A model generated the notes under the pieces. That model saw nothing but the letters and a program-made list of their open reading frames with translations, had not been told where the DNA came from and did no database searches. Of a stretch of DNA of 43,345 nucleotides, positions 5,644-43,345 are shown in pieces. The stretch covers positions 1-43,345 of the forward strand of contig NIVC01004524.1 of assembly GCA_002269645.1 (NCBI GenBank), read 5' to 3'. The position numbers and the translations under genes were made by a program. Every line of letters begins with the position of its first letter. Position 1 is the first letter of the stretch. Source of the DNA: Macrostomum lignano (lineage: Eukaryota).

Positions 5644-5732
<89 letters not shown>

Positions 5733-5753
5733 TAGACAGACAGACAGACAGAC

Positions 5754-5850
<97 letters not shown>

Positions 5851-5861
5851 CTAAGACACTA

Positions 5862-5902
<41 letters not shown>

Positions 5903-5913
5903 CTAAGACACTA

Positions 5914-5954
<41 letters not shown>

Positions 5955-6029
5955 CTCTGACAGACAGACAGACACACAGACAGACAGACACACACACAGA
6001 CAGACAGACAGACAGGCAGACAGACAGGC

Positions 6030-6097
<68 letters not shown>

Positions 6098-14200: not shown

Positions 14201-14449
14201 AGAACTGGCACAAATTCAAAAGAAAAATAATTTTGCAAATAAAATTACATTAGTACCCTAGTCTTATATTTATTTGTAATTTTTATAAATGGTTTATAGT
14301 TCTTTTATAAAATTAAAATGTAAATCATTTGGACCAGATGTAACAAATTCTATAAAGCTTCATAATAAGTTTAAACTTTTTTATAACTAAATAATATGGA
14401 TTCACCTTTTTGTGGCATTTTTTGTTTTAAAACTACGTTGCACTATCCA

Positions 14450-15650
14450 TATAAAAGTCAGGACTTTCAATATACAATCCCCCTTATAAGATGGCAAAAT
14501 TATAAGTTAAAAAAACTTTTAAAACCAAACTTTTAAATAGGAAAACTTAAAAGCGCAGTATTGTATTATAAAGTCTTGGGTTTTGTTAAAAAATGTAGCT
14601 TATATTTACTTTTCCACATGACCATTTAAATGGTAAAATTATTTGTAGGTGATTATAAGACAAAACCAAAGGAGCTTTTTTGGTTTCGAATTACAATCAT
14701 ACTAATAATAAAATTGTATTGGGTTAACCCAAAATTATTTATATATTATATAAAAAATTATAATATTGCAAAGGAATAAACATGATAGGTGAGTCTAGTC
14801 TTAAACAAAAGATTTCAACAATTACTATTCTTAGGAAAACCATTGAATCAGTATAGTCACTCAGAAAAAAAGTTATATTCAATAAAAATAAAAAAATATG
14901 AAATTTTTGCATGTCCCAATGAGAAGTGCTTCAATAAAAAAGAAAACTATTAATAAACAAGAGTATTAAATGGTGCCATGGATATTTTTTAAACTTAAAA
15001 CATGGTTTTAAATTTGTTTAATGTACCCTTTTTTAATTGTAGATTTCTAGTGAATTTTTGGCCATGTTTGTTTGTCCCACAAATGTCTTATCTAGTAGCT
15101 GACGCCAATTTAAGATAATTATAATCTCACTTAAGTATATAGCTCTTTTGGTTTTGTCTTACAAACACGTACAAAAGTGAGGAGAGTGCAGAAGCAATTA
15201 CCATAACAAATAATTTTATTCTCAAACATGCAGATCATTGATGAGATATATTACTTTTTTATGTGGACTGGGACTCTGTGTCCATAGAATGAACACAATT
15301 AAACTGCAAATTTGGGACCATACTAATCCATTCGATTTTGTAATACAATCCCTCTAATACAATTTTACTATCAGTGTGATCAGGTGCAAAACCAACAAGC
15401 TCTTTTGGTTTTTCTTACAATCACCTATATATAATTTCACCATTTAAATAGTTGTATGATGAAAGTGACTATAAGCTATGCTTCTATAACTTTCTATGCT
15501 ACATTTCAAAGATAATTTCAGTGATGATTTGAAGTGATTTGAAAATTGAGTACAATTTACAATAATTGTTAGATTCAGTTTTTTGATATACTGGAACTTT
15601 TTTGACTCTTTTTAATGGGGATTATAAAATAAAACTTGACCTGCTTAGGG
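14450..15650. repeat. Degenerate long inverted repeat (arms ~14450-14730 and ~15340-15650)
   Basis: CCATTTAAATGGTAAAATT...GGTGATTATAAGACAAAACCAAAGGAGCTT (~14620-14680) is mirrored at 15389-15460. A third partial copy lies at 15140-15175. Confidence 0.6.
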
Positions 15651-16418
15651 ATTTTAACTAAAGAATGCCCTAATTGTATATACACCTATATTAACTTATG
15701 TAATGACATTGGCATTGTAATAACAATTAGCACATATATAAAGTCATTTATGTTGCCATTATAAGCCATTTCATCAAGCACCTGAAGCAACCAGATAGGC
15801 AACTGTTGGCCAACCTAGCAGATCTGGCTACCATAAATTGTGGTAAACAGGGAGGGGTAAGCCACAAAAAATTCCAACCAAAAACAATTAGTACTAATTA
15901 GATAATGATGAATTTAGCCTTAATAAGACAGTCATAGTTATTGTTGCCATTTACATAGAATTGCATTAATTTTGCTTAAAGGTTTCTTTCTTAGGTAAGT
16001 CATATTTTTGGTCAAAAAGTAAGTCACATGGCCGGTGTAAATCAGGGGGGTTGCACATGTGTGACCTGGAGCTCTACTATGATTGAAATGGTGCTTACAT
16101 TAAGAACTCAATTTAGCCCATCAGGTTATTTATTACCATTTAGAAAACTTTTATACTGCAAAAATTCTTTATTGTGTTTTTTTAAGATTGTTGAGTTTCA
16201 TTAATATTCCTCTATGCAGGCAATAGGTTTTTAAGTTAAACTTATTTGGTTACTTATGTGTCACTATATAGTTTCAAACAACTATATAGTTACTTATATA
16301 TATATAGCGTGATATTGATGCCACAATGACAGTTTAATATGAATCACAATAATATTTAGCACTGTACAACAACCAAGCATTAAACATTTACATGCATTAT
16401 TCACATTTTCATAGCAAA

Positions 16419-18096
16419 ATGGATCCCAGTTCAGCCTCAATCATAAAGAAGTCATTAAAATACCTGCATAAGCTATGGCAAACAGATGCTTTTACCAAAA
16501 ACTCTGCAATGTTTAAATACTTGACTGCTCAATGGCTGGAGCTGAAGCTAGAGAAATCTGGTGTGCTCTGCTCTAACCAGAAGCTGTTGTGTCATTCAGT
16601 CTGTCCCGGCTGTTTGGGGCAGCAGCCACAGGCCTGCCAACAACACTACACAGTTAGCAGGCGGGGTCTTCGTAGAACTCGAAAGCGTTTAACCAAACGA
16701 TTAGGCAGCTCGGCGAGTGCAGAGGCTGCACTCGCTAGCAGAAAAGTGGTCAGTTTCTATTTTAAACATATTTCTATTGTTATATCTGTACTGTTTGTAA
16801 CCAGTTTGAAAAGCTATAACATCTTACTTTAAAATGATTACCCTGTAACATAATAAGACCTTTTACTCGTCCTGCAATACCCCATTGTAAGATTGTTCTG
16901 CAACACATTCTGATTTTCTGTAACATCCCACTCTTAGATAAGTGCCCTGTAACACATTATGATCGTTCTGTAACACCTCACTTTTAGATAAGTGCCCTGT
17001 AACACATTATGATTGTTCTGTAACACCTCACTCTTAGATAAGTGCCCTGTAACACATTATGATTGTTCTGTAACACCTCACTCTTAGATAAGTGCCCTGT
17101 AACACATTATGATTGTTCTGTAACACCTCACTCTTAGATAAGTGCCCTGTAACACATTATGATTGTTCTGTAACACCTCACTCTTAGATAAGTGCCCTGT
17201 AACACATTATGATTGTTCTGTAACACCTCACTCTTAGATAAGTGCCCTGTAACACATTATGATCGTTCTGTAACACCTCACTCTTAGATAAGGGCCCTGT
17301 AACACATTATGATTGTTCTGTAACACCTCACTCTTAGATAAGTGCCCTGTAACACATTATGATCGTTCTGTAACACCTCACTCTTAGATAAGTGCCCTGT
17401 AACACATTATGATTGTTCTGTAACACCTCACTCTTAGATAAGTGCCCTGTAACACATTATGATTGTTCTGTAACACCTCACTCTTAGATAAGTGCCCTGT
17501 AACACATTATGATTGTTCTGTAACACCTCACTCTTAGATAAGTGCCCTGTAACACATTATGATCGTTCTGTAACACCTCACTCTTAGATAAGTGCCCTGT
17601 AACACATTATGATTGTTCTGTAACACCTCACTCTTAGATAAGTGCCCTGTAACACATTATCCTTCGCTTTGGTGCAGCAACAACCTACTATTAAGTCAGT
17701 CTAAACCTCCTTACCATACTGAAGCACAAACTTTAATCGCAGGTCCGTCTTGTCTGCCCAACCTGCGGTCGCCGCAGCACCACCCGGCAACCGGCTGGTT
17801 CATCCAGCACGCCCGGCTCGACTGCACCCTCTTCGCGGGCGTCGGCTACTCCAAAGACGCCGATACAATCGACAATGTGCCACTCTCGCCAGCCTGGCAG
17901 TTCAAGCCAGGGCAAAGCGAACAAGCATAACAAAACCCTTTGCCGGGTGAAGCTGCTGCAGCAGCGGCAGTACGCTACTGGCGCAAATTTGTCGCCGTCT
18001 GCTTCCGCCGTTTCTTCTTCCGGCAGCAGAAGTTCGCCTGGCGGTGGCATGGCTTCGTTTCTGTCTCTGTTAGGGGCGGGAACGCCAAAGCGATAA
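16419..18096 (+). CDS. C18orf21: C18orf21/RMP24-like Rpr2 (RPP21/Snm1)-family Zn-binding protein, probable RNase MRP subunit; exons 16419-16748 and 17743-18096, 227 aa
   Basis: Two CxxC pairs (VCPGC; VRLVCPTCGR) separated by a basic stretch, an S/T/P-rich linker, KHNKTL..VKLLQQ and a terminal SFLSLLG. These match recalled human C18orf21 (ETCPYC; LLITCKTCNR; KKHFSQLKMLLSQ; NFLSSLKGG) in order and length. Phase-0 GTCAGT donor and CGCAG acceptor. Confidence 0.78.
16910..17660. repeat. 50-bp tandem repeat x~15
   Basis: Unit TAACACCTCACTCTTAGATAAGTGCCCTGTAACACATTATGATTGTTCTG fills the single intron of the C18orf21-like gene. Confidence 0.97.
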
Positions 18097-19631: not shown

Positions 19632-22600
19632 GTGAGTTGCATCTGTAGCTGCCTTTTTACCTGTCTGTCTATCTATCTATCTATCTATTTATCTATCTAT
19701 CTATCTACCTGTCTGTCTATCTATCCATCTATCTATCTATCTGTCTGTCTTTCTGTCTATCTATCTATCTATCTATCTGTCTGTCTGTCTGCAGTTCATT
19801 ACTACTGATTTTTAATAAAGCATTTTGTTTATAACCACACCTGTCATGCCCAACCTCCCCAGCGCGCTGACCCGCCGTCAGCGACACGACCTCGAGCTCA
19901 CTGGCAGCTGCCCGCGTTGCGAAAAATTTCGCGAACAGATCGTCTTTGATGAAAATAACGAGCCGCAGCCCGGCATCAACATCCTGCCGGACTATTTGGC
20001 AGACGGCCTCGACATGGTTGTGGTAAGTTTGGCTCACCTGCTCCCAGATCCTCAGTTGCTGGGCCAGCCTCCCAGATCCTCAGTTGCTGGGCCAGCCTCC
20101 CAGATCCTTAGTTGCTGAGCCAGCCTCCCAGATCCTTAGTTGCTGGGCCAGCCTCCCAGATCCTTAGTTGCTGGGCCAGCCTCCCAGATCCTTAGTTGCT
20201 GGGCCACCAGCCTCCCAGATCCTTAGTTGCTGGGCCAGCCTCCCAGATCCTTAGTTGCTGGGCCAGCCTCCCAGATCCTTAGTTGCTGAGCCAGCCTCCC
20301 AGATCCTTAGTTGCTGGGCCAGCCTCCCAGATCCTTAGTTGCTGGGCCAGCCTCCCAGATCCTTAGTTGCTGGGCCAGCCTCCCAGATCCTCAGTTGCTG
20401 GGCCAGCCTCCCAGATCCTCAGTTGCTGGGCCAGCCTCCCAGATCCTTAGTTGCTGGGTCAGCCTCCCAGATCCTCAGTTGCTGGGCCAGCCTCTTAAAT
20501 CCTCAGTTGCGGGGCCAGCCAACCACACCCTCAGTTGCTGGGCCAGTCTTCCAGATCCGTATATTTCTTACCTCGCCTTTTTGTCTCTACTACTCAGTAT
20601 CCTGGCTATTCAGTAGTGCAAACGCGCGCATTCCCAAAAATCCGATCCGCTATCAAACAGATCGGCATCAATCCCAGCATGACCTCAGCCTACGTGGGTC
20701 ATCACTATGCCGGACCTGGCAATCATTTCTGGTCCTGCCTGAGCGAGAGCGGCCTCATCGCGGAGCCGCTCACCTGCCATGAGGATCACCGGATCTGCGA
20801 TTTTGGCATAGGCTTCACCAATGTGTGCACCAGGCCCACCAAAGGCGCCGCCGATCTGACCAGAAAGGAGATGAAAGAAGGTGCCGAAATCTTGCTGACA
20901 AAATTAAAGAAATACAAGCCGAAAATTGCCGTGTTCAATGGGAAAGGTAGGTCTTGTTTTATATGACTTTCCTGGCCTTTGTTGGGCATTCTATCTGCCC
21001 CGTTCCGCCCCGTTTAACCAACCTGAGGGCACTTCCCCCCATAGTCAGCCATAGGGCACTTTCTGCCCCCCCCCCCATAGTCAGCCATAGGGCACTTTCC
21101 GCCCCCCCCCATGGTCAGCCATAGGGCACTCTCCGCCCCCATAGTCAGCCATAGGGCACTTTCTGCCCCCCCCCCCCATAGTCAGCCATAGGGCACTTTC
21201 CGCCCCCCCCCATGGTCAGCCATAGGGCACTTTCCGCCCCCCCCCATAGTCAGCCATAGGGCACTTTCCGCCCCCCCCCATAGTCAGCCATAGGGCACTT
21301 TCCGCCCCCCCCCATAGTCAGCCATAGGGCACTTTCCGCCCCCCCCCCATAGTCAGCCATAGGGCACTTTCCGCCCCCCCCATAGTCAGCCATAGGGCAC
21401 TTTCCGCCCCCCCCATAGTCAGCCATAGGGCACTTTCCGCCCCCCCCCATAGTCAGCCATAGGGCACTTTCCGCCCCCCCCCCATAGTCTGCCATAGGGC
21501 GCTTGCTAGGCTTCAAGGCTACCCAGCCGCAACCGCCATTGAATTCCCGCAAACTTTCCCAGGCATTTACGAGGCATTCGTTGGTAACAAGAACTTCTAC
21601 ATGGGCAAGCAGCCGGAGCCGCTGGTGGGCACAGACATTGTCGTGTTCGTCATGCCCTCCAGCAGCGCCCGCTGCGCCCAGCTGCCCCGCGCCGCCGACA
21701 AGCTGCCATTCTACGTCGCTCTGAAGAAACTACGTGACTATGTTGTCGGCATCAGCTCGCATCTGAACGATTCCGATGTGGTGTTCACCGACTACACGGA
21801 GATGCGCGTGACGCAGCCGGACCCCAAGAGCGTGCGCAAAGCCGAACGGCGCAGGAAACGCAAGGCGGAGCTGGCCCAGCTCAACCAGGCTGCCGCCGCG
21901 GCTGCCGCCGCGGCTGCCGAGCAGAAAGCTCGAGCTGAAGCAGCCGCCGCTGCCGCAGCCTCCAGCATCGACTCTAAAGAAGCTGTCCAGGCCAAGATTG
22001 CAGCAATGCAGCAGCAGCAGCAGCAGCAACTGCGAGCAGCGGCTGGCGGCGTCAAAGTCGAAGGCTCCACAGCCGCCATCATCGGTCAGCCGGCTGCTGC
22101 TCAAGCTGGCGTAGCCATGCCGCAGCAGTACGCCCTGCTGACGCAGCAGCCCGGCCAGTTCGAGTGGCAGATTTACCAGCCCACTCTGTACTACCAGCTG
22201 CCCGCTGCCAACCCTGCAGATCAGGCTGGCGGCGCTGCTGCCGGCACCTCCGCTGCCGCCGCCGCCGCTGCCTACCTGCGGCCTCAGCTGCAGATCCTTC
22301 AACCGGCCGACGCCGCTGCAGCAATGGCAGCCGCCGGTGTCACCGTCGACAGTTCCGGGGCAGCCGCTCTGGTGAACAATTCTTCGTCATCGTCGGCAGC
22401 GTCATCTCTGGTTGTTTCGTCAACGTCGAATAGCGTCGGCGCCAACGCTGCCGCAACGGCCTTGACGGCGCAGCAGCTGGGTTTCGCCAACCTGCTGCTG
22501 CTCGATCCCAGCCAGCTGCAGGCGGCCGCCGCTGCAGCCGGAGCTGTGGGCGCCACCGTGGCCAGCAGCGTCGCCCTGGTGCCCTCCGTGTCCGCCGGCA

Positions 22601-22671
22601 TCGCCTCCACGGTGCAGGACAGTCGGACAATGGGACAGCAGCAGCATCAGCTGACTTACACCACACTGTGA
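18406..22671 (+). CDS. TDG: G/T mismatch-specific thymine/uracil DNA glycosylase (TDG/MUG family); exons 18406-19631, 19863-20022, 20661-20946, 21563-22671; 926 aa
   Basis: LPDYL..LDMVV|IGINP...GHHYAGPGNHFW, GIGFTNV, KYKPKIAVFNGK|GIYE, VMPSSSARCAQLPRA. All junctions are GT-AG and phase-consistent (2781 nt). An in-frame upstream ATG exists at 18367. Confidence 0.95.
19660..19792. repeat. (CTAT/CTGT)n microsatellite
   Basis: TDG intron 1. Confidence 0.95.
19863..20022 (+). CDS. TDG: TDG exon 2
   Basis: Ends ILPDYLADGLDMVV at a GTAAGT donor (cf. human TLPDILTFNLDIVI). Confidence 0.92.
20038..20550. repeat. 28-bp minisatellite (CAGATCCTTAGTTGCTGGGCCAGCCTCC)
   Basis: TDG intron 2. Confidence 0.96.
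20661..20946 (+). CDS. TDG: TDG exon 3: catalytic core
   Basis: IGINP (catalytic Asn) through IAVFNGK. Confidence 0.96.
21025..21500. repeat. ~33-35-bp minisatellite with poly-C run (CATAGTCAGCCATAGGGCACTTTCCGC7-9)
   Basis: TDG intron 3. Confidence 0.96.
21563..22671 (+). CDS. TDG: TDG exon 4: end of catalytic core plus Ala/Gln-rich C-terminal tail
   Basis: GIYEAFVG...MPSSSARCAQLPR (Arg-finger loop), basic KAERRRKRK, poly-Ala and poly-Gln, TGA at 22669-22671. Confidence 0.95.
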
Positions 22672-29558: not shown

Positions 29559-32500
29559 CGCAACAAAATCAACGGTCGAGCCAAAAGGAGCAAACACTGA
29601 GGAGCGAACACCAGCGAGCAGCTTTGCGAAGCAGATCGACGAGTCATATGCTTGACTGTTGTTGCTCCCACTTGCATTTCAACAGCTGCTGCCGCTGCTG
29701 CTGCTGTTTTTGTGAATGCAACTTGCACCAAGTCTGCCACGGTTGCATCGGTGCCTGCACAAACTGCTCCAACATCTGCTTCTGCGACAGCGAGACTGGA
29801 AGCAATTGTGCCCAGTGCTCAAGTTAGTCCTGCCTTTTTGCTAACTCTTAGTCAGTCAGTGAGTCAGTCAGTCAGTGAGTCAGTGAGTCAGTCAGTCAGT
29901 CAGTCAGTCAGTCAGTCAGTCAGTCAGTCAGTCAGTCAGTCAGTCAGTCAGTCAGTCAGTCAGTCAGTCAGTCAGTCAGTCAGTCAGTCAGTCAGTCAGT
30001 CAGTCAGTCAGTCAGTCAGTCAGTCAGTCAGTCAGTCAGTCAGTCAGTCAGTCAGTCAGTCAGTCAGTCAGTCAGTCAGTCAGTCAGTCAGTCAGTCAGT
30101 CAGTCAGTCAGTCAGTCAGTCAGTCAGTCAGTCAGTCAGTCAGTCAGTCAGTCAGTCAGTCAGTCAGTCAGTCAGTCAGTCAGTGAGTGAGTGAGTCAGT
30201 CAGTCAGTCAGTCAGTCAGTCAGTGAGTCAGTCAGTGAGTCAGTCAGTCAGTCAGTCAGTCAGTGAGTGAGTGAGTCAGTCAGTCAGTCAGTCAGTCAGT
30301 CAGTCAGTCAGTCAGTCAGTCAGTCAGTCAGTCAGTCAGTCAGTCAGTCAGTCAGTCAGTCAGTCAGTCAGTCAGTCAGTCAGTCAGTCAGTCAGTCAGT
30401 CAGTCAGTCAGTCAGTTAGTCAGCACGAGAGCGCAGGGCCCGAAGCGATGACAGGGGGCTTCGCCAGAACAGGCAGCCCACTCTTCTATTTGCAGCGCCT
30501 GCAGTCGGGAACCCAGCCCAGTCCTGCATGTTTAACAGACTTGGCTAGCAAAAATTATCATTCCTTCAGCGCAGTAGTCTCGGTAAAATGCTGCCCCATT
30601 AGCCTAGTAAGCCTTTACAAGCTTTTTAGAAGAAAGCCTTTAGAAGAAGGACTGCCCTCTCGGTGCGTTAAAAGGACCCTTTGGCCGGCAGAAGATATCG
30701 AGTCTGACACTTTGGGCGCTAATTCGAGACACTACTGCAAACGAATGCTGCATGCGGATTCCAACTACAATAAATCTCCACGGAGACTGCAGAATGCCAT
30801 GCATATAGCTATAGGGTTAAGTCTAACCCGCACAGGGCCCCAACTCCCAACTCTCCCTGCTTGCCTCTCCCGTCTCTCAGTGGGATTGGACCTCGCCTCC
30901 AGCCTCCTCCTCCTCCATTCCTGACAACTTTTCGCCCTGATATCAGCGCCAGTTCATTGGGCCGCTAGGCGGATTGTCGGCAAGGAAACAAAAATAGCTC
31001 CAATAGCTTTGCCAACTCTGTCGCGGAATAAACGTTCTAAAAAGCGTTCTGTAAGAATCCTCAGACGAAACCTCTTCTAACCGAATTCAGTCAGCAGCTT
31101 CCGAGAACGACGCCGGGCAGACTCGGAAGACCGAGACGCTGAAAACGACCAGCAGGCGATCGGCAACCAGAGCAACCCTCTTGACGGAGCAGCGGAACAG
31201 CGGCCAAGACGCCATCGCCGCTGTCATCGACGCCGGGGAACAACTACAGCGGCTGGAGCCACAGACTCTGGCATGTCCATAGCGCCGGCTGTTTCTGCGG
31301 CCGCAGCAATGGTCGCTGGCACTGCAGTGGCCTCGATGGCGGCGGCTCGCGCTGGCTCGCTGGCCAAGGCGGGCAGCATCGCGCCCGGCCGCCCGCCGCC
31401 GCCGGAGAACCGCATCGTCATCAACGTCGGCGGCGTCCGCTTCGAGACGTACAAATCCACGCTGAAGAACATCCCGGACACGCGGCTGGCCTGGCTAACG
31501 GAGACCACGTCAACTAACAATGCCGATTTCGACCCGGACACTGGCGAGTACTTCTTCGACAGGCACAGCGGCGTGTTCGCAATGATCCTCAACTACTACC
31601 GCACCGGCCGGCTGCACACCCCCATGGACATCTGCGGCCCCATGTTCGAGGAGGAGCTGGCCTACTGGGGCATCGACGAGAAGCAGATGGAGTCCTGCTG
31701 CTGGACCACCTACCGGACCCACCGGGACGCGCAGGAGACCCTCGCTGAGCTGAACGGCGGCGAACTGTCTGACGATGACGACGACGACGGTGAGAATGAC
31801 ACGGCGAAGAAGTTCGGCATCGAAGAGGCCGCCGCGCCTGAGCTCACCTGGTGGCAGCGCTGCCGGCCCAGGGCCTGGGCCTGGCTGGAGGGGCAGGGAG
31901 TCGGAGTGCCCGGGAAGGTGAGACTGACTGACTGACTGACTGACTGACTGACTGACTGACTGACTGACTGACTGACTGACTGACTGACTGACTGACTGAC
32001 TGACTGACTGACTGACTGACTGACTGACTGACTGACTGACTGACTGACTGACTGACTGACTGACTGACTGACTGACTGACTGACTGACTGACTGACTGAC
32101 TGACTGACTGACTGACTGACTGACTGACTGACTGACTGACTGACTGACTGACTGACTGACTGACTGACTGACTGACTGACTGACTGACTGACTGACTGAC
32201 TGACTGACTGACTGACTGACTGACTGACTGACTGACTGACTGACTGACTGACTGACTGACTGACTGACTAATCTATTGCATGAACACTATGGCACTTTGG
32301 CTCAGACAACGGTGCAGCACTAAGTTTTGTGCAGTTGTTGACACGAACATGCGAACAGCAGTTGTGAAGGGAAATAACATTTTAGCTCTGATGAAGTTAA
32401 TCCCTGCAATTTATCTTCACGTTCTAGGTGGGGGGACGTTGGCATTCCTTTCATTGAGATTTGCGCGTGTCAATGTTGTTTACTTTGTCAGCAGTGCTAT

Positions 32501-35500
32501 TGCAGTAGTGAGTCAACGACAACAGTATCTGCCATCTCCGCGCGGAGTGGAATGGGGCTAGGAACAACTGTCAAACAAAGGTCGACGCGTGCGTCCGGAG
32601 TGTGTCCGGCCCCCGCCACTCCGGGCTTGCAGCGGGGTGGAACAGGTCGCGGACGACCCAAAAGGCGCCGCGAAAATTGGGATAAAAGAAGCGTTTGCAT
32701 TATGCATGCCAAGGAGATCCTCGGGTGGTTGAGTCTGTTTTAGAGCAAAAAAACTCTCTAGCTGGGTCCGTCTTTATCCGCCGCAGGAGCTGGCAGGGGC
32801 GGCCCCAGGAGGAGGCGAAGGCGTGGCCTGAGCGGGATATTTTTATACGGGCGGATCCGGGAAGAGAAGGAGCTGCTGATGACGAGAAGCGGGAAGCTGA
32901 CAGTGAATTGAGGAACTGGGTTGCAGGGGGCGGTGGGGGCTGAAGCCTCTCAGTAGGCAGAGAAACCTGACACACACCTCCGCCTCATCATCCATTCTAG
33001 AGGCTGAACTGTCCAACTCCGTGGGTGACTGGGTCCTGAGTAGCAACTGATGTCCAAAATTCCCATGGATAAGCTGAAAACGAGGGATTTTTTCTGAGAA
33101 AAAAGCACCAAAGATTTGCCGGTGTTTCTTGTTCAGCTGCCACATTTCGCTAGTGGTGGCGGCGAGGTCTGCCATTTGCTTTACTTTGAAGCAGTCTTCT
33201 ATGAGTAAAAACTTGACTAATTAATCTTTACCTGCCGACGACAGGCCTTCGACTTGAAGCTTGAAGCTAAAGAAAAAAATGGTTGAAAATTGAAAAATTT
33301 ACAGACTATAGAAACAAATTGTTAGAATTGTGGCTTCCGCAACGGAAACAGAGTATTGCGGCTAGCCGACAGAGGGGCGCAGAAGGGCATCAAGGAAGTT
33401 AAAGAAAAGCGAAAGAAAGCAGAAAAATTCGATTTTTTTCGGTTTCTACAGCGCCGGATGCCTGGGCTGGAAAAGTTAGCTGAAGTGAATTCTGTCGAGA
33501 ATGAAGCAACACAAACGGCAAGTAATCGTCTACCTGGCCCTTGCGCGTCTCTGCTATGCAGATTCAGCCTCTCGTGTTGCATTCCACCCCCCCCCTTGTG
33601 CAGCATGGCCAGTCAGATTGGGGTTGACATATTCGTCTGAAGTCAATGCGCAGTGTCTGTCATCCGCGGTGCATGAGGCGAACTGCACTGCAATGCTAAC
33701 TGAGGCACACTTGACTGCAGTTGATGCAAGCCATTTGTGGCAAGCCGGGTCTGATTTTAATCACTATATGGGATGTGAAGTGCTGCTGTTGCCGGGGACA
33801 GACATTCAACCCTTAAGTATAGGCAGAACAATGCCCTTGAGGCCTGTTCACACAGCCATTAAACCACGCGGCTGATGTACGAGTTGAAGACAACGGAACA
33901 TCATGGCTGCTTTACAGAGTGTACGTGCCCGACGATTAGATTGCAGCGCTGGTTTCGGAACGATGTCGCATGAAGGCATTGCGCCCGCAGCATTCCTGCA
34001 GTTATTATTGTCATAGTTAAACTTTCGCAACTCGCTTCCAGATTCTGGCAACAGTGTCCGTCCTGTTCATCCTGGCGTCCATTGTCATTTTTATGGTGGA
34101 AACCCTGCCGAGTGTGCGAACAGTTCGACCAGAATCGAATGTGAGCAACTGCACGGGACTGACTGTGTCGGATTGTCTCAGGCAGACTACCCCTCACGCG
34201 GCTATACAGGTAATCATGTTTGTGAATAGTATGCAGTACCGTATGCTCATTGTGTTTTTGCTATTTCAGACGTGATAAAATTGCTTCGAATGGCCCTCTC
34301 TATCCGGCCCTCTCTAAAGAGCCTCTCTATCCGGCCCTCTCTAAAGAGCCTCTCTATCCGGCCCTCTCTAAAGAGCCTCTCTATCCGGCCCTCTCTAAAG
34401 AGCCTCTCTATCCGGCCCTCTCTAAAGAGCCTCTCTATCCGGCCCTCTCTAAAGAGCCTCTCTATCCGGCCCTCTCTAAAAAGCCTCTCTATCCGGCCCT
34501 CTCTAAAGAGCCTCTCTATCCGGCCCTCTCTATCCGGCCCTCTCTATCCGGCCCTCTCTAAAGAGCCTCTCTATCCGGCCTTCTCTAAAAAGCCTCTCTA
34601 TCCGGCCCTCTCTAAAGAGCCTCTCTATCCGGCCCTCTCTAAGGAGCCTCTCTATCCGGTCCTCTCTAAGGAGCCTCTCTATCCGGCCCTCTCTAAAGAG
34701 CCTCTCTATCCGGCCCTTTCTAAAGAGCCTCTCTAAGAGCCTATCCGGCCCTCTCTATCCGGCCATCTCTATCCGGCCCTCTCTAAAGAGCCTCTCTAAG
34801 AGTCTATCCGGCCCTCGGGGTCTTTTGAAACTTCACTATAGCGATCAGGCCCGCTCAATGTTTACGAGCTATATCTCTCTTCTCAGCGCTCTTCTGTCTA
34901 ATCTCCTCTCTACTCTCTTCCTCTCTCCTCTCCTTTTCTTTCCTCCCTTCTCCTCTCGTCTCCGCTCCTCTCTCCTCTTATCCTCATCGATCTCTATCCT
35001 CTCTTCTCTCTCCTCCTCTCTCCTCCTCTCCTCTCTCCTCTTCTCTCCACTCCTCTCTTCTCCTTTATTCTCTCGCCTCTTATCTCCCTTCTCTCTTATT
35101 TATTCCATCTCCTCTCTCCCCTCCTCCAGCCCGCAGTCATTATCTAAGTTCTCTATCTGGCCCTTGAGGTAAAAAAGTTTGCCAACCCCTTGCTTAAAGT
35201 CTTCAAGCACTTGTACTTTTGTGCAAGATGCAATGGGTACAGATGTCGTGAGCTGAGCTGTATACTCATTTCGCTGATCACTGAGCACTCACACGAATAA
35301 GTGCTCAGACTCACAACTCACACAGTGTACTGTTTTTGTATCATTGCCAGGCAGTGTAGGCGAGATCTGTGCGTTCCGCAATAATCCCCAAGACCAATTT
35401 CTTTGCAAAAGAACCAAGTGTAATGTGCTGCGATCGAGAGTCAGTCTGAGCATACTCCTGCATTAAAATGAAGCAACTATGAGATTTGTGAAGCAGACAC

Positions 35501-38500
35501 AATAAATTTGTCCAGGATTCGGGACACCGTTGCCCAGCACGCAGCAATTTTACCTGTTAATACCCTGGTATTGCGCCGAGCTTGCACTTATGCAGAGGCT
35601 ACTCCTGATCCTGTTTCCGAAGCTAAACAATGTCATGCACGATTAGTGACCAGGATGCCATAAACTTATTAGGATCCTTAACAAGGTTACCTCAATTACG
35701 TACCCAGCTAATGCTGGCACCCATTTTACAGCTGGGGGAACTGAAGCAACGCATAACCTTTAAGTGTCTTGCTCAAGGACACATATTGTTCAGATTCCAA
35801 GTGGAGTCACATTAATTTGGGGCTGAATTGGAATCTCGGCTTGGCTCTGCTCGTGCAATTAACGGCCTTGAGAGCCAACCACCCAAGGCGCAGTGAAGTG
35901 TACATGCCTAACGATAAAATAAAGTTAGGGCCTCTGTACACTCCTGTGCATTTGCCTGGCATATGCATTTAGTAAAACAGCTTTCTACTTTCAGTTCAGT
36001 AGCAAAGAAGAATACATAAGCTGGCAGCTGAAATGACTTTGATAAGTTTAGACGCCCAATCTCGCATTCGTAAACAACTTGCTAACTGGTTCAGCCATAA
36101 TGTACATTGGCCAATCCAACTGAAATGTACATGGCAGCTTTAGGCTGGAATTCCGTGAAAAGCAATAAAAATTGGGGCGGGGCGGGGGGTGGGTAGTGTG
36201 GAAAGGCGCGATTGGAGGGTTCAAGCTGGGGGTTGAGCCAATAAAATTAGCCTTAGCTTTAAAAATACGTTTAAACGCTACTTCAGTTTAACTTGCTACT
36301 GAACTGAAAGTAGATTGCATGGAAATGTGCTGAATGGCCCATCTAGCTATTCTAATACCTGTGCCTAGACCCAAAAATTTATAATTAAGGCCAATGCCTA
36401 ATACAATACCCACCAACGCCTTTACTGCAGGTATTCGACATAGTCATAACGTTCTACTTCACTCTGGAGCTGCTCGCTCGAATACTGTTCTGCCCGCAAA
36501 AGGGAGAATTTTTCAAATCGGTGCTCAACTGGATCGACATCGTTGCCGTGTTTACGGCCTACGTGTCCTATGTCGTATTTTACGCAATGCCGCCCGACTC
36601 AACGGTGGTCGCACTGCAGATACTGAAAGTGCCCAGAATATTTCGCATCTTCAAACTGACCAGACACTTCTCCGGATTGAAAATCCTTGTGCACACGATG
36701 AAGGCCTCCTCCAGAGAGCTGATGCTCTTGGCTATAGTCTTTGCCATATTTGTCATTCTGTGTGGAACTGCCGTGTTCATCTGCGAGCAGTTCGTTGAGA
36801 CGCACGCCAACGAGTTCACTACCATACCCATCGGCTTCTGGTGGGCTCTGGTCACCATGACAACGCTTGGATACGGAGACGTTGTGCCTAAATCACTGCC
36901 AGGTTCGGCTGGGGGTTGAATTTTACAGTTTCATTGTAACAGCCCACAAATGATTACAGGTGATTCTGCCACCCTAAGAGTTCAACCACTCGTGCCTCTA
37001 CCCCATGCCTCCACCCCCATGCCTCTGCCCCCACGTCTCTACCCCACGTCTCTACCCCCACGTCTCTACCCCCACGTCTCTGCCCCCACGTCTCTGCCCC
37101 CACGTCTCTGCCCCCACGCCTCTGCCCCCACGTCTCTACCCCCACGTCTCTGCCCCCACGCCTCTGCCCCCACGTCTCTACCCCCACGTCTCTGCCCCCA
37201 CGTCTCTACCCCCACGTCTCTGCCCCCACGTCTCTACCCCAATGCCTCTACCCCCACGCCTCTACCCCAATGCCTCTGCCCCCACGTCTCTACCCCCACG
37301 CCTACTCTACCCTAATGCTTCTACCCCAATGCCTCTACCCCAATGCCTCTACCCCAATGCCTCTACCCCAATGCCTCTACCCCAATGCCTCTACCCCAAT
37401 GCCTCTACCCCAATGCCTCTACCCCAATGCCTCTACCCCAATGCCTCTACCCCAATGCCTCTACCCCAATGCCTCTACCCCAATGCCTCTACCCCAATGC
37501 CTCTACCCCAATGCCTCTACCCCAATGCCTCTACTCCAACGCCTCTACCCCAATGCATATACCATTTATTCGGTCGACATTAGGTCGATTTTATCTCATG
37601 AAAGTTGAGCTTGAAGTACAGAAGCTATCTGGAAAATGTTTGCCATTGTATTGGTATCGCAGACTCACTATATATGCTTACTTATTAAAAATTGTCGTCT
37701 TAAAACAGTCAACAGCCGTCGAGCAATCCTCACCTCACGATAGGTCACTCACTAGAAATGCGATTCACTGATTCAATCTTGAAGAAGCTCACAAATTTAA
37801 TTACAGTTGAATCAGCGACTCGGTTTCCGGGTAGACGGGAGAATTACTCGAATTTCTCGGCCGAGCTGTCAGGATTTGAATTGAAAATGCTCCCGATTGC
37901 GTGTCCGTGACCCTGCCCGGTGGCAGATCCTGTGAAAGGGGGAAGGCTTGACGCCGGATTAAAAAGTTTTTGAAGTACAATTTGTACTTTCTTAATCAAA
38001 GTCCATGCGCTAGGCAGCTGTCTATAGCATTATCCGGGACAGACAGACAGGCGTGTTAAATAATCCTAACGGCACTTTGCTTCAGTTGAATCAGCGGCTG
38101 AGACAATTTTAGGCAAAGAAATCTGAAAGCAGATAAAAATAAGATTTTTCAATTTGTATTTTACTGACAGATTATTTTAAGCCGCAGAGGCTGGAACTTA
38201 ACTTTTGAATAATTTTCGGGCATTGGTGGATTGAGCATTGGGCATTTGTCGCCGAAAGGGGTCCCCATCACAAACCCGAAATAGCATAAAAACCCGAAAT
38301 AGCATAAAAACCCGAAATAGCATAAAAACCCGAAATAGCATAAAAACCCGAAATAGCATAAAAACCCGAAATAGCATAAAAACCCGAAATAGCATAAAAA
38401 CCCGAAATAGCATAAAAACCCGAAATAGCATAAAAACCCGAAATATCATAAACCCGAAATATCACAAACCCGAAATATCATAAACCCGAAATATCATAAA

Positions 38501-39306
38501 CCCGAAATATCACAAACCCGAAATATCAAACTCGAAATATCATAAAAACCCGAAATATCATAAACCCGAAATATCATAAACCCGAAATATCACAAACCCG
38601 AAATATCAAACTCGAAATATCATAAAAACCCGAAATATCATAAACCCGAAATATCATAAACCCGAAATATCACAAACCCGAAATATCATAAACCCGAAAT
38701 ATCACAAAAACCCGAAATATCACAAACCCGAAATATCACAACTCCGAAATATCACAAACCCGAAATATCACAGACTAGAAATATCATAAACCCAAAACAT
38801 TACAAACCCATGAAGTGTCACAAACAAGGACAAACAAGGTTGTTAAGTAGTCCTTGGTCACAAACCCGAAATATCATAAGCCCGAATTATCACAAATATT
38901 TCGGGTTTTTGTGATATTTCGGGTTTGTGATCCCCCTCCGCCGAAGGCTCTGCGCCACAGGGTTGTCAACCAGGAGTAAATTTCAAGCCGACCGAACACA
39001 CCGCAGGCTATCTGGTCGGAGGCGTCTGTGCCATCAGCGGCGTGTTGGTCATCGCCCTGCCGGTGCCCATCATCGTGAACAACTTCGCCCTGTACTACAC
39101 CCACGCGCAGGCGCGGCTCAAGCTGCCTAAACGAAAGAAGCGCGTTTTGGTTGGCGCACCAGACGCGCTGAAGCAGACAGTCGGCTCGCTGTCCGAAGTT
39201 GGCGACGACTTCATCCCCGGATTCGGCGGCGGCGACTACAGCGAGAGCGACGACACCGAAGACTCGTCGGCGGAGGATGCGGCAGCAAGTCAAGACGAGA
39301 AGCTCA
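26328..39306 (+). CDS. Shaw: Voltage-gated potassium channel, Kv3/Shaw family; exons 26328-26496 and 29454-29822 (tentative), 31091-31917, 34042-34209, 36431-36902, 39007-39306; 3' end unresolved
   Basis: T1 domain ([17 protein letters not shown]...FFDRH...LNYYRTG...HX5CX20CC), S1-S6, TLGYG filter, PVP gate, and Kv3-typical [26 protein letters not shown] and KLPKRKKR. All junctions are phase-consistent. Confidence 0.95.
26942..27340 (-). mobile_element. hAT-like MITE, copy 2 (both TIRs present)
   Basis: TIRs CAGGGGTTGA... and ...TCGACCCCTG, GA-rich interior. Flanking 8-mers CTCTACTC / ATTTACTT are only a partial TSD match. Confidence 0.75.
27660..28390. repeat. 13-bp minisatellite (CCCCATCTTCAAT / CTTCACT variants)
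   Basis: Direct reading. Confidence 0.96.
29454..29822 (+). CDS. Tentative Kv3 second coding exon (polyQ plus Cys-rich cluster)
   Basis: GTCGCAG acceptor and A|GTTAGT donor, 369 nt, phase 1/1, open frame joining 26496 to 31091. Confidence 0.5.
29850..30423. repeat. (TCAG)n microsatellite
   Basis: Direct reading; begins ~27 nt after the donor at 29823. Confidence 0.98.
31091..31917 (+). CDS. Shaw: Kv3 exon: basic cluster, Ala-rich linker, T1 domain, pre-S1
   Basis: Frame is open from 31081, acceptor TTCAG at 31090, donor AAG|GTGAGA. An internal ATG at 31273 is an alternative start. Confidence 0.95.
31921..32269. repeat. (GACT/CTGA)n microsatellite, reverse complement of 29850-30423
   Basis: Direct reading; begins inside the donor consensus GTGAGACTGACT. 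Confidence 0.98.
34042..34209 (+). CDS. Shaw: Kv3 exon: S1 and S1-S2 loop
   Basis: [23 protein letters not shown]...PH; TTCCAG and GTAATC sites. Confidence 0.92.
34280..35190 (+). mobile_element. hAT-like MITE, copy 3, with its left subterminal segment amplified into a 27-bp minisatellite
   Basis: Right end GGCCCTTGAGGTAAAAAAGTTTGCCAACCCCT matches copy 2. 34810-34850 matches copy 1. 34288-34815 is tandem CCTCTCTATCCGGCCCTCTCTAAAGAG. Confidence 0.72.
35640..35785 (-). mobile_element. CORE-SINE (MIR-core)-like fragment
   Basis: CCCATTTTACAGCTGGGGGAACTGAAGC...AAGTGTCTTGCTCAAGGACACA (35720-35783) closely follows the recalled MIR core CCCATTTTACAGATGAGGAAACTGAGGC...AAGTGACTTGCCCAAGGTCACA. Confidence 0.6.
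35791..35923 (+). mobile_element. Same SINE family, 5'-truncated copy 2
   Basis: Shares AATCTCGGCTTGGCTCTGCTCGTGCAATTAACG and TACATGCCTAACGATAAA with 2470-2590. Confidence 0.7.
36431..36902 (+). CDS. Shaw: Kv3 exon: S2-S5 and pore
   Basis: [52 protein letters not shown]. Confidence 0.96.
36990..37555. repeat. Two adjacent 14-bp minisatellites (CCCCACGTCTCTAC then CCCCAATGCCTCTA)
   Basis: Direct reading. Confidence 0.95.
38262..38936. mobile_element. Foldback/MITE-like element: long array of AAACCCGAAATA(G/T)CA(T/C) units closed by two inverted units
   Basis: Left end ATCACAAACCCGAAATA; right end TATTTCGGGTTTTTGTGATATTTCGGGTTTGTGAT is its reverse complement. 18-bp units then 16-bp units. 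Confidence 0.6.
39007..39306 (+). CDS. Shaw: Kv3 exon: S6 and proximal C-terminus
   Basis: [31 protein letters not shown]; A|GTGAGT donor. Confidence 0.96.
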
Positions 39307-39409
39307 GTGAGTGCCGTCATAAAATTTCAAGCATTCTGTGAGCGCCCTGGCAATGAGTCAGAGCTGCTGCGCATGTACACCCTTTTAAGGGCCTTTTAAA
39401 GGTAATTTT

Positions 39410-40116: not shown

Positions 40117-40219
40117 ACCAACGGCTCGGCCCCCGAGACGCCTCCAGGCATCACCGTAGAGTTTATGGATGTCCAGTCCAGCAGCAAGAAGTCCCTGCGG
40201 AGTTCGCTGGCTGTTCCAG
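40117..40219 (+). CDS. Possible further Kv3 C-terminal exon (frame unresolved)
   Basis: GC-rich island between TTTTCACCCAG and AG|GTAAAT. Best-looking frame TNGSAPETPPGITVEFMDVQSSSKKSLRSSLAVPG is phase 0, which does not match the phase-1 donor at 39306. Confidence 0.45.
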
Positions 40220-41212: not shown

Positions 41213-41224
41213 CAGATAGATAAT

Positions 41225-43345
41225 TCGATAGAAATGCCGATAGAAATGTCGATAGAAATGTCGATAGAAATGCCGATACAAATGTCGATAGAAATGTCGA
41301 TAGAAATGCTGATAGAAATGTCGATAGAAATGTCGATAGAAATGTCGATAGAAATGCTGATAGAAATGTCGATAGAAATGTCGATAGAAATGCTGATAGA
41401 AATGTCGATAGAAATGTCGATAGAAATGCCGATAGAAATGCCGATAGAAATGTCGATAGAAATGTCGATAGAAATGTCGATAGAAATGTCGATAGAAATG
41501 CCGATAGAAATGAAATGCTGATAGAAATGTCGATAGAAATGTCGATAGAAATGTCGATAGAAATGCTGATAGAAATGTCGATAGAAATGTCGATAGAAAT
41601 GCTGATAGAAATGTCGATAGAAATGTCGATAGAAATGTCGATAGAAATGTCGATAGAAATGCCGATAGAAATGTCGATAGAAATGTCGATAGAAATGTCG
41701 ATAGAAATGCCGATAGAAATGTCGATAGAAATGTCGATAGAAATGCCGATACAAATGTCGATAGAAATGTCGATAGAAATGCTGATAGAAATGTCGATAG
41801 AAATGTCGATAGAAATGTCGATAGAAATGCTGATAGAAATGTCGATAGAAATGTCGATAGAAATGCCGATAGAAATGTCGATAGAAATGTCAATAGAAAT
41901 GTCGATAGAAATGCCGATAGAAATGTCGATAGAAATGTCGATAGAAATGCTGATAGAAATGTCGATAGAAATGTCGATAGAAATGTCGATAGAAATGCTG
42001 ATAGAAATGTCGATAGAAATGTCGATAGAAATGCCGATAGAAATGTCGATAGAAATGTCAATAGAAATGTCGATAGAAATGCCGATAGAAATGTCGATAG
42101 AAATGTCGATAGAAATGCCGATAGAAATGTCGATAGAAATGTCAATAGAAATGTCGATAGAAATGCCGATAGAAATGTCGATAGAAATGTCGATAGAAAT
42201 GCTGATAGAAATGTCGATAGAAATGTCGATAGAAATGCCGATAGAAATGCCGATAGAAATGTCGATAGAAATGTCGATAGAAATGTCGATAGAAATGTCG
42301 ATAGAAATGCCGATAGAAATGATAGAAATGCTGATAGAAATGTCGATAGAAATGTCGATAGAAATGCTGATAGAAATGTCGATAGAAATGTCGATAGAAA
42401 TGCTGATAGAAATGTCGATAGAAATGTCGATAGAAATGCTCGATAGAAATGTCGATAGAAATGTCGATAGAAATGCGATAGAAATGCTGATAGAAATGTC
42501 GATAGAAATGTCGATAGAAATGTCGATAGAAATGTCGATAGAAATGTCGATAGAAATGTCGATAGAAATGTCGATAGAAATGTCGATAGAAATGTCGATA
42601 GAAATGTCGATAGAAATGTCGATAGAAATGTCGATAGAAATGTCGATAGAAATGTCGATAGAAATGTCGATAGAAATGTCGATAGAAATGTCGATAGAAA
42701 TGCTGATAGAAATGTCGATAGAAATGTCGATAGAAATGCCGATAGAAATGTCGATAGAAATGTCAATAGAAATGTCGATAGAAATGCCGATAGAAATGCG
42801 ATAGAAATGTCGATAGAAATGCTGATAGAAATGTCGATAGAAATGTCGATAGAAATGCCGATAGAAATGCCGATAGAAATGTCGATAGAAATGTCGATAG
42901 AAATGTCGATAGAAATGTCGATAGAAATGTCGAAATAGAAATGCCGATAGAAATGATAGAAATGTCGATAGAAATGTCGATAGAAATGCTGATAGAAATG
43001 TCGATAGAAATGTCGATAGAAATGTCGATAGAAATGTCGATAGAAATGCTGATAGAAATGTCGATAGAAATGTCGATAGAAATGCCGATAGAAATGTCGA
43101 TAGAAATGTCGATAGAAATGCTGATAGAAATGTCGATAGAAATGTCGATAGAAATGTCGATAGAAATGAAATGCTGATAGAAATGTCGATAGAAATGTCG
43201 ATAGAAATGCTGATAGAAATGTCGATAGAAATGTCGATAGAAATGCCGATAGAAATGCCGATAGAAATGTCGATAGAAATGTCGATAGAAATGTCGATAG
43301 AAATGTCGATAGAAATGCCGATAGAAATGAAATGCTGATAGAAAT
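41225..43345. repeat. 12-bp satellite (TCGATAGAAATG)n running off the window end
   Basis: About 2.1 kb visible, with variants CCG, CTG and TCA at the first three positions. Confidence 0.99.

Follow-up and report, generated by a model that had tools for sequence, protein, structure and literature searches.

N.at-Kv3.2, a Kv3 channel of the polyclad flatworm Notoplana atomata, passes a non-selective omega current through its voltage sensor, which replaces conduction through the canonical pore (PMC2443804). It is a precedent for the notion that an atypical S4 segment in a flatworm Kv3 channel can yield qualitatively new behaviour. Regulatory subunits of voltage-gated potassium (Kv) channels are recognised by atypical residues within PVPVIV, the consensus of the S6 gate (PMC6279357). 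In the calcium channel CaV3.3, mutation of the proline P711 in IIS4 shifts activation by 10-12 mV (PMC5825144), and S4 prolines are therefore compatible with voltage sensing. Here, we describe a Shaw/Kv3-family gene with a proline in S4 from the flatworm Macrostomum lignano, located on a stretch of 43,345 nucleotides (contig NIVC01004524.1 of assembly GCA_002269645.1, positions 1 to 43,345 of the forward strand), which is referred to as the window. The gene is placed on the plus strand at positions 31273-39341 and contains four coding exons with an uninterrupted frame and a product of 539 amino acids. We consider it probable, at roughly 0.7, that the region encodes a functional, pore-forming Shaw (Kv3/KCNC) alpha subunit whose S3-S4 paddle has been remodelled specifically in its lineage.

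Family Assignment and Gene Structure

The best solved relative of the protein, as identified by a HMMER search against all PDB sequences, was human Kv3.1 (420 bits over residues 45-480, E=1e-124), while the scores for Kv2.1, Kv4.2 and Kv1.2 were 265, 248 and 235 bits, respectively. At this E-value for the match to Kv3.1, chance resemblance is not an issue. Pfam matches were obtained to BTB_2 at residues 48-142 (E=9e-31) and to Ion_trans at residues 216-462 (E=6e-40). The structure prediction covered the transmembrane (TM) domain, for which the AlphaFold2 model has a mean pLDDT of 81.4 and a pTM of 0.65, and the top Foldseek matches to this model were structures of Kv3.1. Relatives were searched for among 1.84 billion representative proteins, of which the closest named full-length ones were a KCNC1-like protein from Lingula (54% identity), a protein from Lymnaea (54%) and a Shaw-like protein from Patiria (52%). 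The T1 tetramerisation domain is 72-80% identical to the T1 domains of canonical spiralian Shaws, and a query with T1 yielded solely unnamed fragments of at most 80% identity, among which Macrostomum was not represented. A query with the S1-S4 region gave no matches. As judged from its sequence, the window gene is thus a Shaw/Kv3 (KCNC) subunit in which T1, the selectivity filter and the gate are intact and the voltage-sensor domain (VSD) departs from the vertebrate Kv3 consensus.

In a neighbour-joining tree, the protein paired with a relative from M. lignano, here called P0273, at 100% bootstrap support. The pair joined the Shaws of Lingula, Lymnaea and Patiria with weak support (46-53%), and we do not assign it a particular sister group. 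The two proteins appear to represent a divergent Shaw clade that has so far been seen only in Macrostomum flatworms.

The first exon (31273-31917) encodes the N-terminus, the T1 domain and the segment that precedes S1, and ends in the donor AAG/GTGAGA in phase 0. The second exon (34042-34209; acceptor CCAG/ATT, donor CAG/GTAATC, phase 0) encodes S1 and the S1-S2 loop with the N-glycosylation sequons NVS and NCT. The third exon (36431-36902; acceptor TGCAG/GTA, donor CAG/GTTCGG, phase 1) encodes S2, S3, S4, the S4-S5 linker, S5, the pore helix and the filter, and the fourth (39007-39341; acceptor CGCAG/GC) encodes S6 with the gate, a KLPKRKKR motif and an acidic tail that ends in the stop codon TGA at 39339-39341. 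All exons have canonical AG/GT borders. In a tblastn search, the four-exon model was collinear with the independently annotated P0273, with identical joints, and the first exon was covered from 31387 to 31917 at 85% identity. No alternative S3/S4 exon was found in the introns by tblastn with four Shaw proteins, which matched the four exons and otherwise gave only chance-level matches in the introns. No protein identical to the window product is recorded in the databases.

The S4 Voltage Sensor

The S4 segment (36614-36664) has a glutamine at R1 (Q334; CAG, 36617-19), a lysine at R2 (K337; AAA, 36626-28) and a proline just before R3 (P339; CCC, 36632-34), followed by R340, R343, K346 and R349. 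In the HMMER alignments to the solved Kv3.1 and Kv1.2, the stretch LQILKVPR is aligned to LRVVRFVR and LRVIRLVR, respectively, and the register with Gln at R1, Lys at R2 and a Val-to-Pro change is therefore correct. The original prediction, made from the sequence of the window before any database search, had named these three features, and they are borne out. It had also described the gene as Shaw/Kv3 with an off-consensus VSD, of which the family and the departure hold, whereas the term degenerate sensor does not fit: five of the six basic S4 positions are kept (K-R-R-K-R), R1 alone is neutral and S4 contains no acidic residue.

The residues at each position were counted in 149 other representative relatives, of which 134-147 cover each counted column. 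Glutamine is the commonest residue at R1 (45 of 147), followed by arginine (20), glutamate (17) and aspartate (10). The KCNC-like proteins of Tubulanus (a nemertean), Bugula (a bryozoan) and Hydra have it, as do all Kv2-type clusters, such as that of a KCNB1-like protein of Glandiceps. Kv2-type channels with this glutamine are ordinary delayed rectifiers. At R2, where the window protein has a lysine, the relatives have arginine in 100 cases, serine in 21 and lysine in 5, and the serines represent the arthropod and nematode Shaw type. By these counts, the R1-to-Q change is normal, the R2-to-K change is conservative and has precedent, the changes in S3 and before S1 are uncommon, and the S4 proline alone is unique to the clade. 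The canonical S4 used as a comparator in the original prediction was that of vertebrate Kv3, which is unrepresentative of invertebrate Shaws. That prediction had itself stated that a wide occurrence of the same S4 among spiralian Shaws would speak against it. Such an occurrence was found for the residue at R1 and partly for that at R2, as exemplified by Tubulanus with both Q and K, but not for the proline.

Some of the relatives have unusual S4 segments of their own. In the KCNC1-like proteins of Sardina pilchardus (P0159 and P0272), S4 reads LLMVPRCLRLLRIFKLTRR, with a methionine at R1 and a proline just before R2. This independent case is the only comparable S4 proline among the relatives compared, and S4 prolines beside a neutral R1 thus arose more than once. 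In a Shaw-like protein of Lymnaea stagnalis (P0122, CAL1540895.1), S4 reads FLNSFRLIMIFRILKLTRH, with an asparagine at R1 and a methionine at R3, and is naturally charge-poor.

Channel Motifs Outside S4

The T1 zinc site, of the form H-x5-C-x20-CC, is intact by direct reading, with HTPMDIC at 31615-31635 and CC at 31696-31701. An inter-subunit zinc site in T1 is common to the non-Shaker subfamilies. In S2 (36434-36490), column mapping identified D274 at the outer acidic site, F281 in the charge-transfer centre, E284 and R288. The outer site is glutamate in 74 and aspartate in 46 of 142 relatives, and the three other positions have the same residue as the window protein in most of them (F in 135 of 144, E in 134 of 145 and R in 135 of 146). 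The filter TLGYGD is placed at 36863-36880 and the S6 gate PVPIIV at 39060-39077, both by sequence mapping. The gate has consensus residues at all six positions (in the relatives P104, V69/I66, P119, I79/V51, I112 and V105). The T1 zinc site, the phenylalanine and glutamate of S2, the TLGYG filter and the PVP gate had all been predicted to be intact, and all of them were found.

In S3 (36527-36586), D307 is kept, while the conserved proline in the middle of the segment is replaced by a threonine, so that the motif ILPFY reads VFTAY (36548-36562), as had been predicted. The column contains proline in 102 and threonine in 6 of 146 relatives. In the model of the TM domain, S3 is one unbroken helix up to the residues Y-A, which are followed by a two-residue turn. 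The segment before S1 (31876-31917) stands in place of the conserved motif W.L[FL][ED].P.SS..A. At three of its columns the window protein has Q, G and G, while the relatives have P (116 of 134), S (116 of 134) and A (111 of 135). This replacement, which was likewise predicted, is confirmed by mapping and is also seen in P0273, where the corresponding peptide is WALLEVEGTGVGGPGK.

We considered whether the peptide before S1 could represent read-through into an intron, and rejected it. The only strong donor follows GPGK at 31917/31918, both flanking exon ends are in phase 0, and S1 is reached after exactly the same distance as in Kv3.1. Furthermore, the homologous peptide in P0273 is located at the same exon joint.

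The S5 segment (36716-36793) had been described as divergent. In the alignment of relatives, the S4-S5 linker and S5 are 43% identical to the Shaws of Lingula and Lymnaea, which are 69% identical to each other in this region, and to that extent the description holds. The divergence is moderate only: a single S5 position conserved in at least 80% of the relatives is altered, with a phenylalanine-to-cysteine change at residue 382 (F382C).

A Second Shaw Protein of the Same Clade in M. lignano

The protein P0273 (UniRef A0A1I8I3I8; fragments A0A1I8IWU2, P0127, and A0A1I8F3L4, P0046) is 77% identical to the window protein over 474 residues. It has the same S4 core (QILKVPRI), the S5 cysteine corresponding to Cys382, the T1 serine corresponding to Ser99, and the same filter and gate. 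It also has a threonine for the S3 proline (VAVATAC) and lacks the conserved motif before S1. It differs in that the S3-S4 turn is four residues shorter, two additional residues are present before S1, and a histidine replaces the leucine before Q334. We infer that it is a paralog, or an ortholog from a congeneric species, rather than the product of the same gene. Because the same set of features is present in P0273, the features must be older than the divergence of these genes and were inherited, and thus represent neither read errors nor decay.

The identity between the two proteins varies along their lengths and amounts to 96% in T1, 98% in S6, 90% in the S4-S5 linker and S5, and 54% in S2. 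From Q334 through the S4-S5 linker, only 1 of 35 residues differs, the probability of which is 0.0008-0.002 at the average divergence of the proteins. The atypical S4 therefore ranks with the most strongly constrained segments of the protein, contrary to what a decaying sensor would show.

Two other M. lignano models, P0147 and P0176, were considered as further members of the clade with a broken S4, and were rejected. They are frameshift-ridden and partly fused models of the paralog P0273. An automated survey of S4 motifs in M. lignano could be led astray by them.

Functional Interpretation

All elements of a voltage-gated, K+-selective homotetramer are present in the window protein, which makes that function the most likely. 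Four subunits would assemble via T1, either as homotetramers or together with the paralog, whose T1 is nearly identical, or with other Shaw subunits. Upon depolarisation, K337, R340 and R343 would then pass the charge-transfer centre, and the K+-selective pore would open. The lineage-specific changes comprise a proline acquired just before R3 in S4, the disappearance of the usual one in the middle of S3, a very short S3-S4 turn, and a remodelling of the segment before S1 and of the S4-S5 linker and S5. Activation is probably retuned by these changes in its midpoint, slope and kinetics while voltage sensing is kept, although the direction and size of such effects are unpredictable from sequence. 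In S4 of CaV and NaV channels, prolines occur in the pattern R-P-x-R. The L-type Ca channels are also reported to have conserved prolines in IS4 and IIIS4 (Yamaguchi 1999).

Several observations weigh against a functional, voltage-sensing Shaw subunit of this kind. The column before R3 contains L, I, M, V, A or F in the relatives and a proline in none of 147, which means that the effect of P339 is without precedent in any Kv channel. In the AlphaFold2 model, S4 is helical except at K337, where the helix is interrupted for one residue two positions ahead of the proline (local pLDDT 73-83), while a control Shaw fragment from the same alignment set, with the S4 pattern K-R-R-R-K-R, was modelled with a continuous S4 helix. 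As soft evidence, the model suggests that P339 kinks S4 at R2, and such a break could impair the travel of S4. Positions conserved in at least 80% of the relatives are also changed, namely the P, S and A of the segment before S1, F382C in S5 and P99S in T1, and the two Macrostomum proteins are about 25% further from the outgroups than the Shaws of Lingula or Lymnaea. Finally, one flatworm Kv3 channel with an atypical S4 conducts nothing through its canonical pore (PMC2443804).

A homomeric Shaw channel that is weakly voltage-dependent, leak-like or strongly shifted would be a special case of the functional subunit favoured here, in which the loss of the basic R1 and the proline in S4 flatten and shift the conductance-voltage (G-V) relation, as in the Drosophila Shaw. 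We regard this case as possible but doubtful. The Drosophila Shaw, in which the S4 charge is low (net +3) and the first basic position has its charge reversed, has a very shallow activation that is unsaturated below +200 mV (PMC2217113), and the back-mutants of N.at-Kv3.2 that behave as delayed rectifiers are right-shifted and shallow, with a V50 of +26 to +74 mV and a slope of 15-27 mV (PMC2443804). The helix break predicted at R2 by AlphaFold2 would fit such a phenotype. However, R2 is basic in the window protein and serine in the arthropod and nematode Shaws, and the S4 charge exceeds that of the Drosophila Shaw. In a study of swapped S4 segments, neither the net charge of S4 nor specific charges predicted the slope of the G-V relation (PMC2217113), and a leak-like phenotype can therefore not be read from the sequence. 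A glutamine at R1 is, moreover, normal in Kv2-type delayed rectifiers. Another reading is a subunit that functions in heteromers only, which would form no homotetramers and would modulate canonical Shaws. This is improbable, although a cluster of regulatory subunits within the Kv3 subfamily exists in Nematostella (PMC6279357), the clade evolves faster and has unusual residues before S1 and in S5, and the similarity of T1 to that of canonical spiralian Shaws makes co-assembly plausible. An atypical S6 gate was present in 42 of 43 verified regulatory subunits and is considered to be of "high predictive value" (PMC6279357), while PVPIIV in the window protein is canonical. Since degeneration of the gate is the published hallmark, a heteromer-only role is disfavoured. 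In addition, T1 is conventional except for P99S and well conserved between the paralogs, and no published criterion ties the degeneration of S4 to a silent phenotype. The step taken in the original prediction from a degenerate S4 to a leak-like or silent subunit is thus unsupported, given the canonical gate and the frequency of glutamine at R1. A neutral R1 is the norm across the family and predicts neither leak-like gating nor silent status, and the apparent degeneracy is an artefact of the vertebrate Kv3 yardstick.

A natural gating-pore channel similar to N.at-Kv3.2, in which a non-basic R1 facing a short S2 aspartate and a kinked S4 open a non-selective cation path at negative voltages, is very unlikely. 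There is a precedent in a flatworm Kv3, where the pore was ascribed to a compact R1, an S2 Asp in place of Glu and a possible bend in S4 (PMC2443804), and the counterparts in the window protein are Q334, D274 and a predicted break at K337. Yet N.at-Kv3.2 requires a non-basic residue at R3 (G331), as both G331R and G331K convert it to a delayed rectifier (PMC2443804), whereas R3 in the window protein is Arg340. Glutamine is also larger than the A, C, S and V that give omega currents at R1 of Shaker (PMC2443804), and many ordinary channels combine Gln at R1 (45/147) with Asp (46/142) or Glu at the outer S2 site, so that D274 does not discriminate. A broader proposal is that the S3-S4 paddle has been rebuilt, with the helix-breaking proline moved from the middle of S3 into S4 before R3, beside a two-residue S3-S4 turn and a neutral R1 that faces a short Asp, and that the sensor is qualitatively unlike that of any characterised Kv channel. 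We consider this unlikely; if true, it could imply an omega conductance, a phenotype open upon hyperpolarisation as in N.at-Kv3.2, or merely partial movement of the sensor charge. It is hardly credible that the gene is a pseudogene or that the features result from assembly errors or mis-read codons. The region is dense in tandem repeats, the models P0147 and P0176 of the paralog are riddled with frameshifts and an identical protein has not been recorded, but the frame of 539 codons is unbroken over four exons with canonical splice sites, the Q/K/P pattern of S4, the S3 threonine and the change before S1 recur in an independent M. lignano sequence, and conservation in S4 and the S4-S5 linker significantly exceeds that of the remaining protein.

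The value for annotation is ordinary and consists in a lineage-specific Shaw/Kv3 gene of a flatworm, for which a four-exon model has been validated. The chief biophysical interest is in the natural, conserved proline in a Kv S4 segment, paired with the loss of a conserved proline in S3. As an omega current has evolved in one flatworm Kv3, the window gene is a well-defined candidate for relating the geometry of the S4 helix to gating. M. lignano is a laboratory model in which RNAi and transgenesis are available.

Putative Alternative C-Termini and Surroundings of the Gene

Two donors are located in the region of the fourth exon, namely GTGAGT at 39307 and, after KRKKRVL, a weak one. A candidate alternative C-terminal exon, TNGSAPETPPGITVEFMDVQSSSKKSLRSSLAVPG, is located on the plus strand at 40117-40219 and is flanked by CCCAG on the upstream side and GTAAAT on the downstream side. 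It encodes NGSAPETPPGITVEFMDV and, further on, KKSLRSSLAVPG, and resembles, by eye only, the C-terminal sequence 'ITVxFxDEV ... RRxSLxPNG' of the Shaws from Lingula, Patiria and M. lignano. The two donors and the candidate exon suggest that the gene may have alternative C-termini in the style of Kv3.

The density of micro- and minisatellites is extreme across the window, with 23 tandem-repeat (TRF) rows that score at least 200. The arrays include those at 5578-6112, 16898-17660, 29850-30423, 34295-34798, 36993-37556, 38267-38809 and 41215-43329, and the last 2 kb of the window are taken up by 176 copies of a 12-mer. Each intron of the channel gene carries a repeat array. In the first intron, a (GACT)87 microsatellite at 31922-32269 on the plus strand starts 4 nt past the donor of the first exon. 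When translated, the repeat arrays yield long spurious open reading frames (ORFs). An AT-rich block at 11000-16000 with a GC content of 25-32% is located between regions of 45-63% GC and contains no ORF of 110 amino acids or more.

The window also contains a PARP4-like (vault PARP) gene at 1100-10100 on the minus strand, with the PARP catalytic exons at 6188-6520 and 4854-5513. The VIT domain is encoded by an exon at 3904-4455, and the exons at 2599-2997 and 1108-1812 probably encode vWA. Within the same range, a BRCT-like ORF at 9708-10055 had no Pfam match. A DNA glycosylase gene of the TDG/MUG type is placed at 20535-22671 on the plus strand, with a match to the UDG superfamily at 20535-20966 that is followed by a long ORF rich in Ala and Gln at 21601-22671, for which no Pfam match was obtained.

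Comparison with Known Channels

The window protein shares with human Kv3.1 (KCNC1; PDB 7PHH, 8F1C and 8QUC) the T1 zinc site, the FCP.K motif after S2, RIFKLTRHF in S4, the filter and the PVP gate, and its KLPKRKKR motif corresponds to KLPKKKK in Kv3.1. It differs in that Kv3.1 has an arginine at both R1 and R2, a valine at the site of P339, ILPFY in S3 and DPYSS before S1. At the end of S1 in Kv3.1, the residues C208, H212 and E213 form the interface between the sensor and the pore (PMC9287412), and in a manual alignment these correspond to M, L and P in the window protein.

Among the invertebrate Shaws, the Drosophila Shaw and the arthropod and nematode type, represented by Pectinophora (P0124) and Panagrellus (P0128), resemble the window protein in subfamily and in having a non-basic R1. 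However, they contain a glutamate at R1 and a serine at R2 (LEFFSIIRIMRLFKLTRH), with a net charge of +3, whereas the window protein has a lysine at R2 and no acidic residue in S4. The KCNC2-like protein of Tubulanus polymorphus (P0140, XP_074659756.1), another spiralian Shaw-like protein, also has a glutamine at R1, a lysine at R2 (LQTIKLARIFRMFKLTRH) and a canonical gate, but the proline site contains an alanine, S3 retains IVPFY and the overall identity is about 51%. Outside the Kv channels, natural prolines that tune the activation voltage are present in working S4 segments of CaV channels, such as P711 in CaV3.3 (PMC5825144). These belong to another branch of the channel superfamily, and their proline is placed elsewhere in the R-x-x-R triplet than in the K-x-P-R of the window protein.

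The flatworm channel N.at-Kv3.2 (Klassen, Spencer and Gallin 2008, PMC2443804), which was compared by its published description, is likewise a member of the Shaw family in which R1 is non-basic, the outer S2 site contains an aspartate and the canonical pore is conserved. It has a histidine at R1 and a glycine at R3, the latter of which was found in none of the 149 other representatives, while the window protein has a glutamine at R1, an arginine at R3 and the proline before R3.

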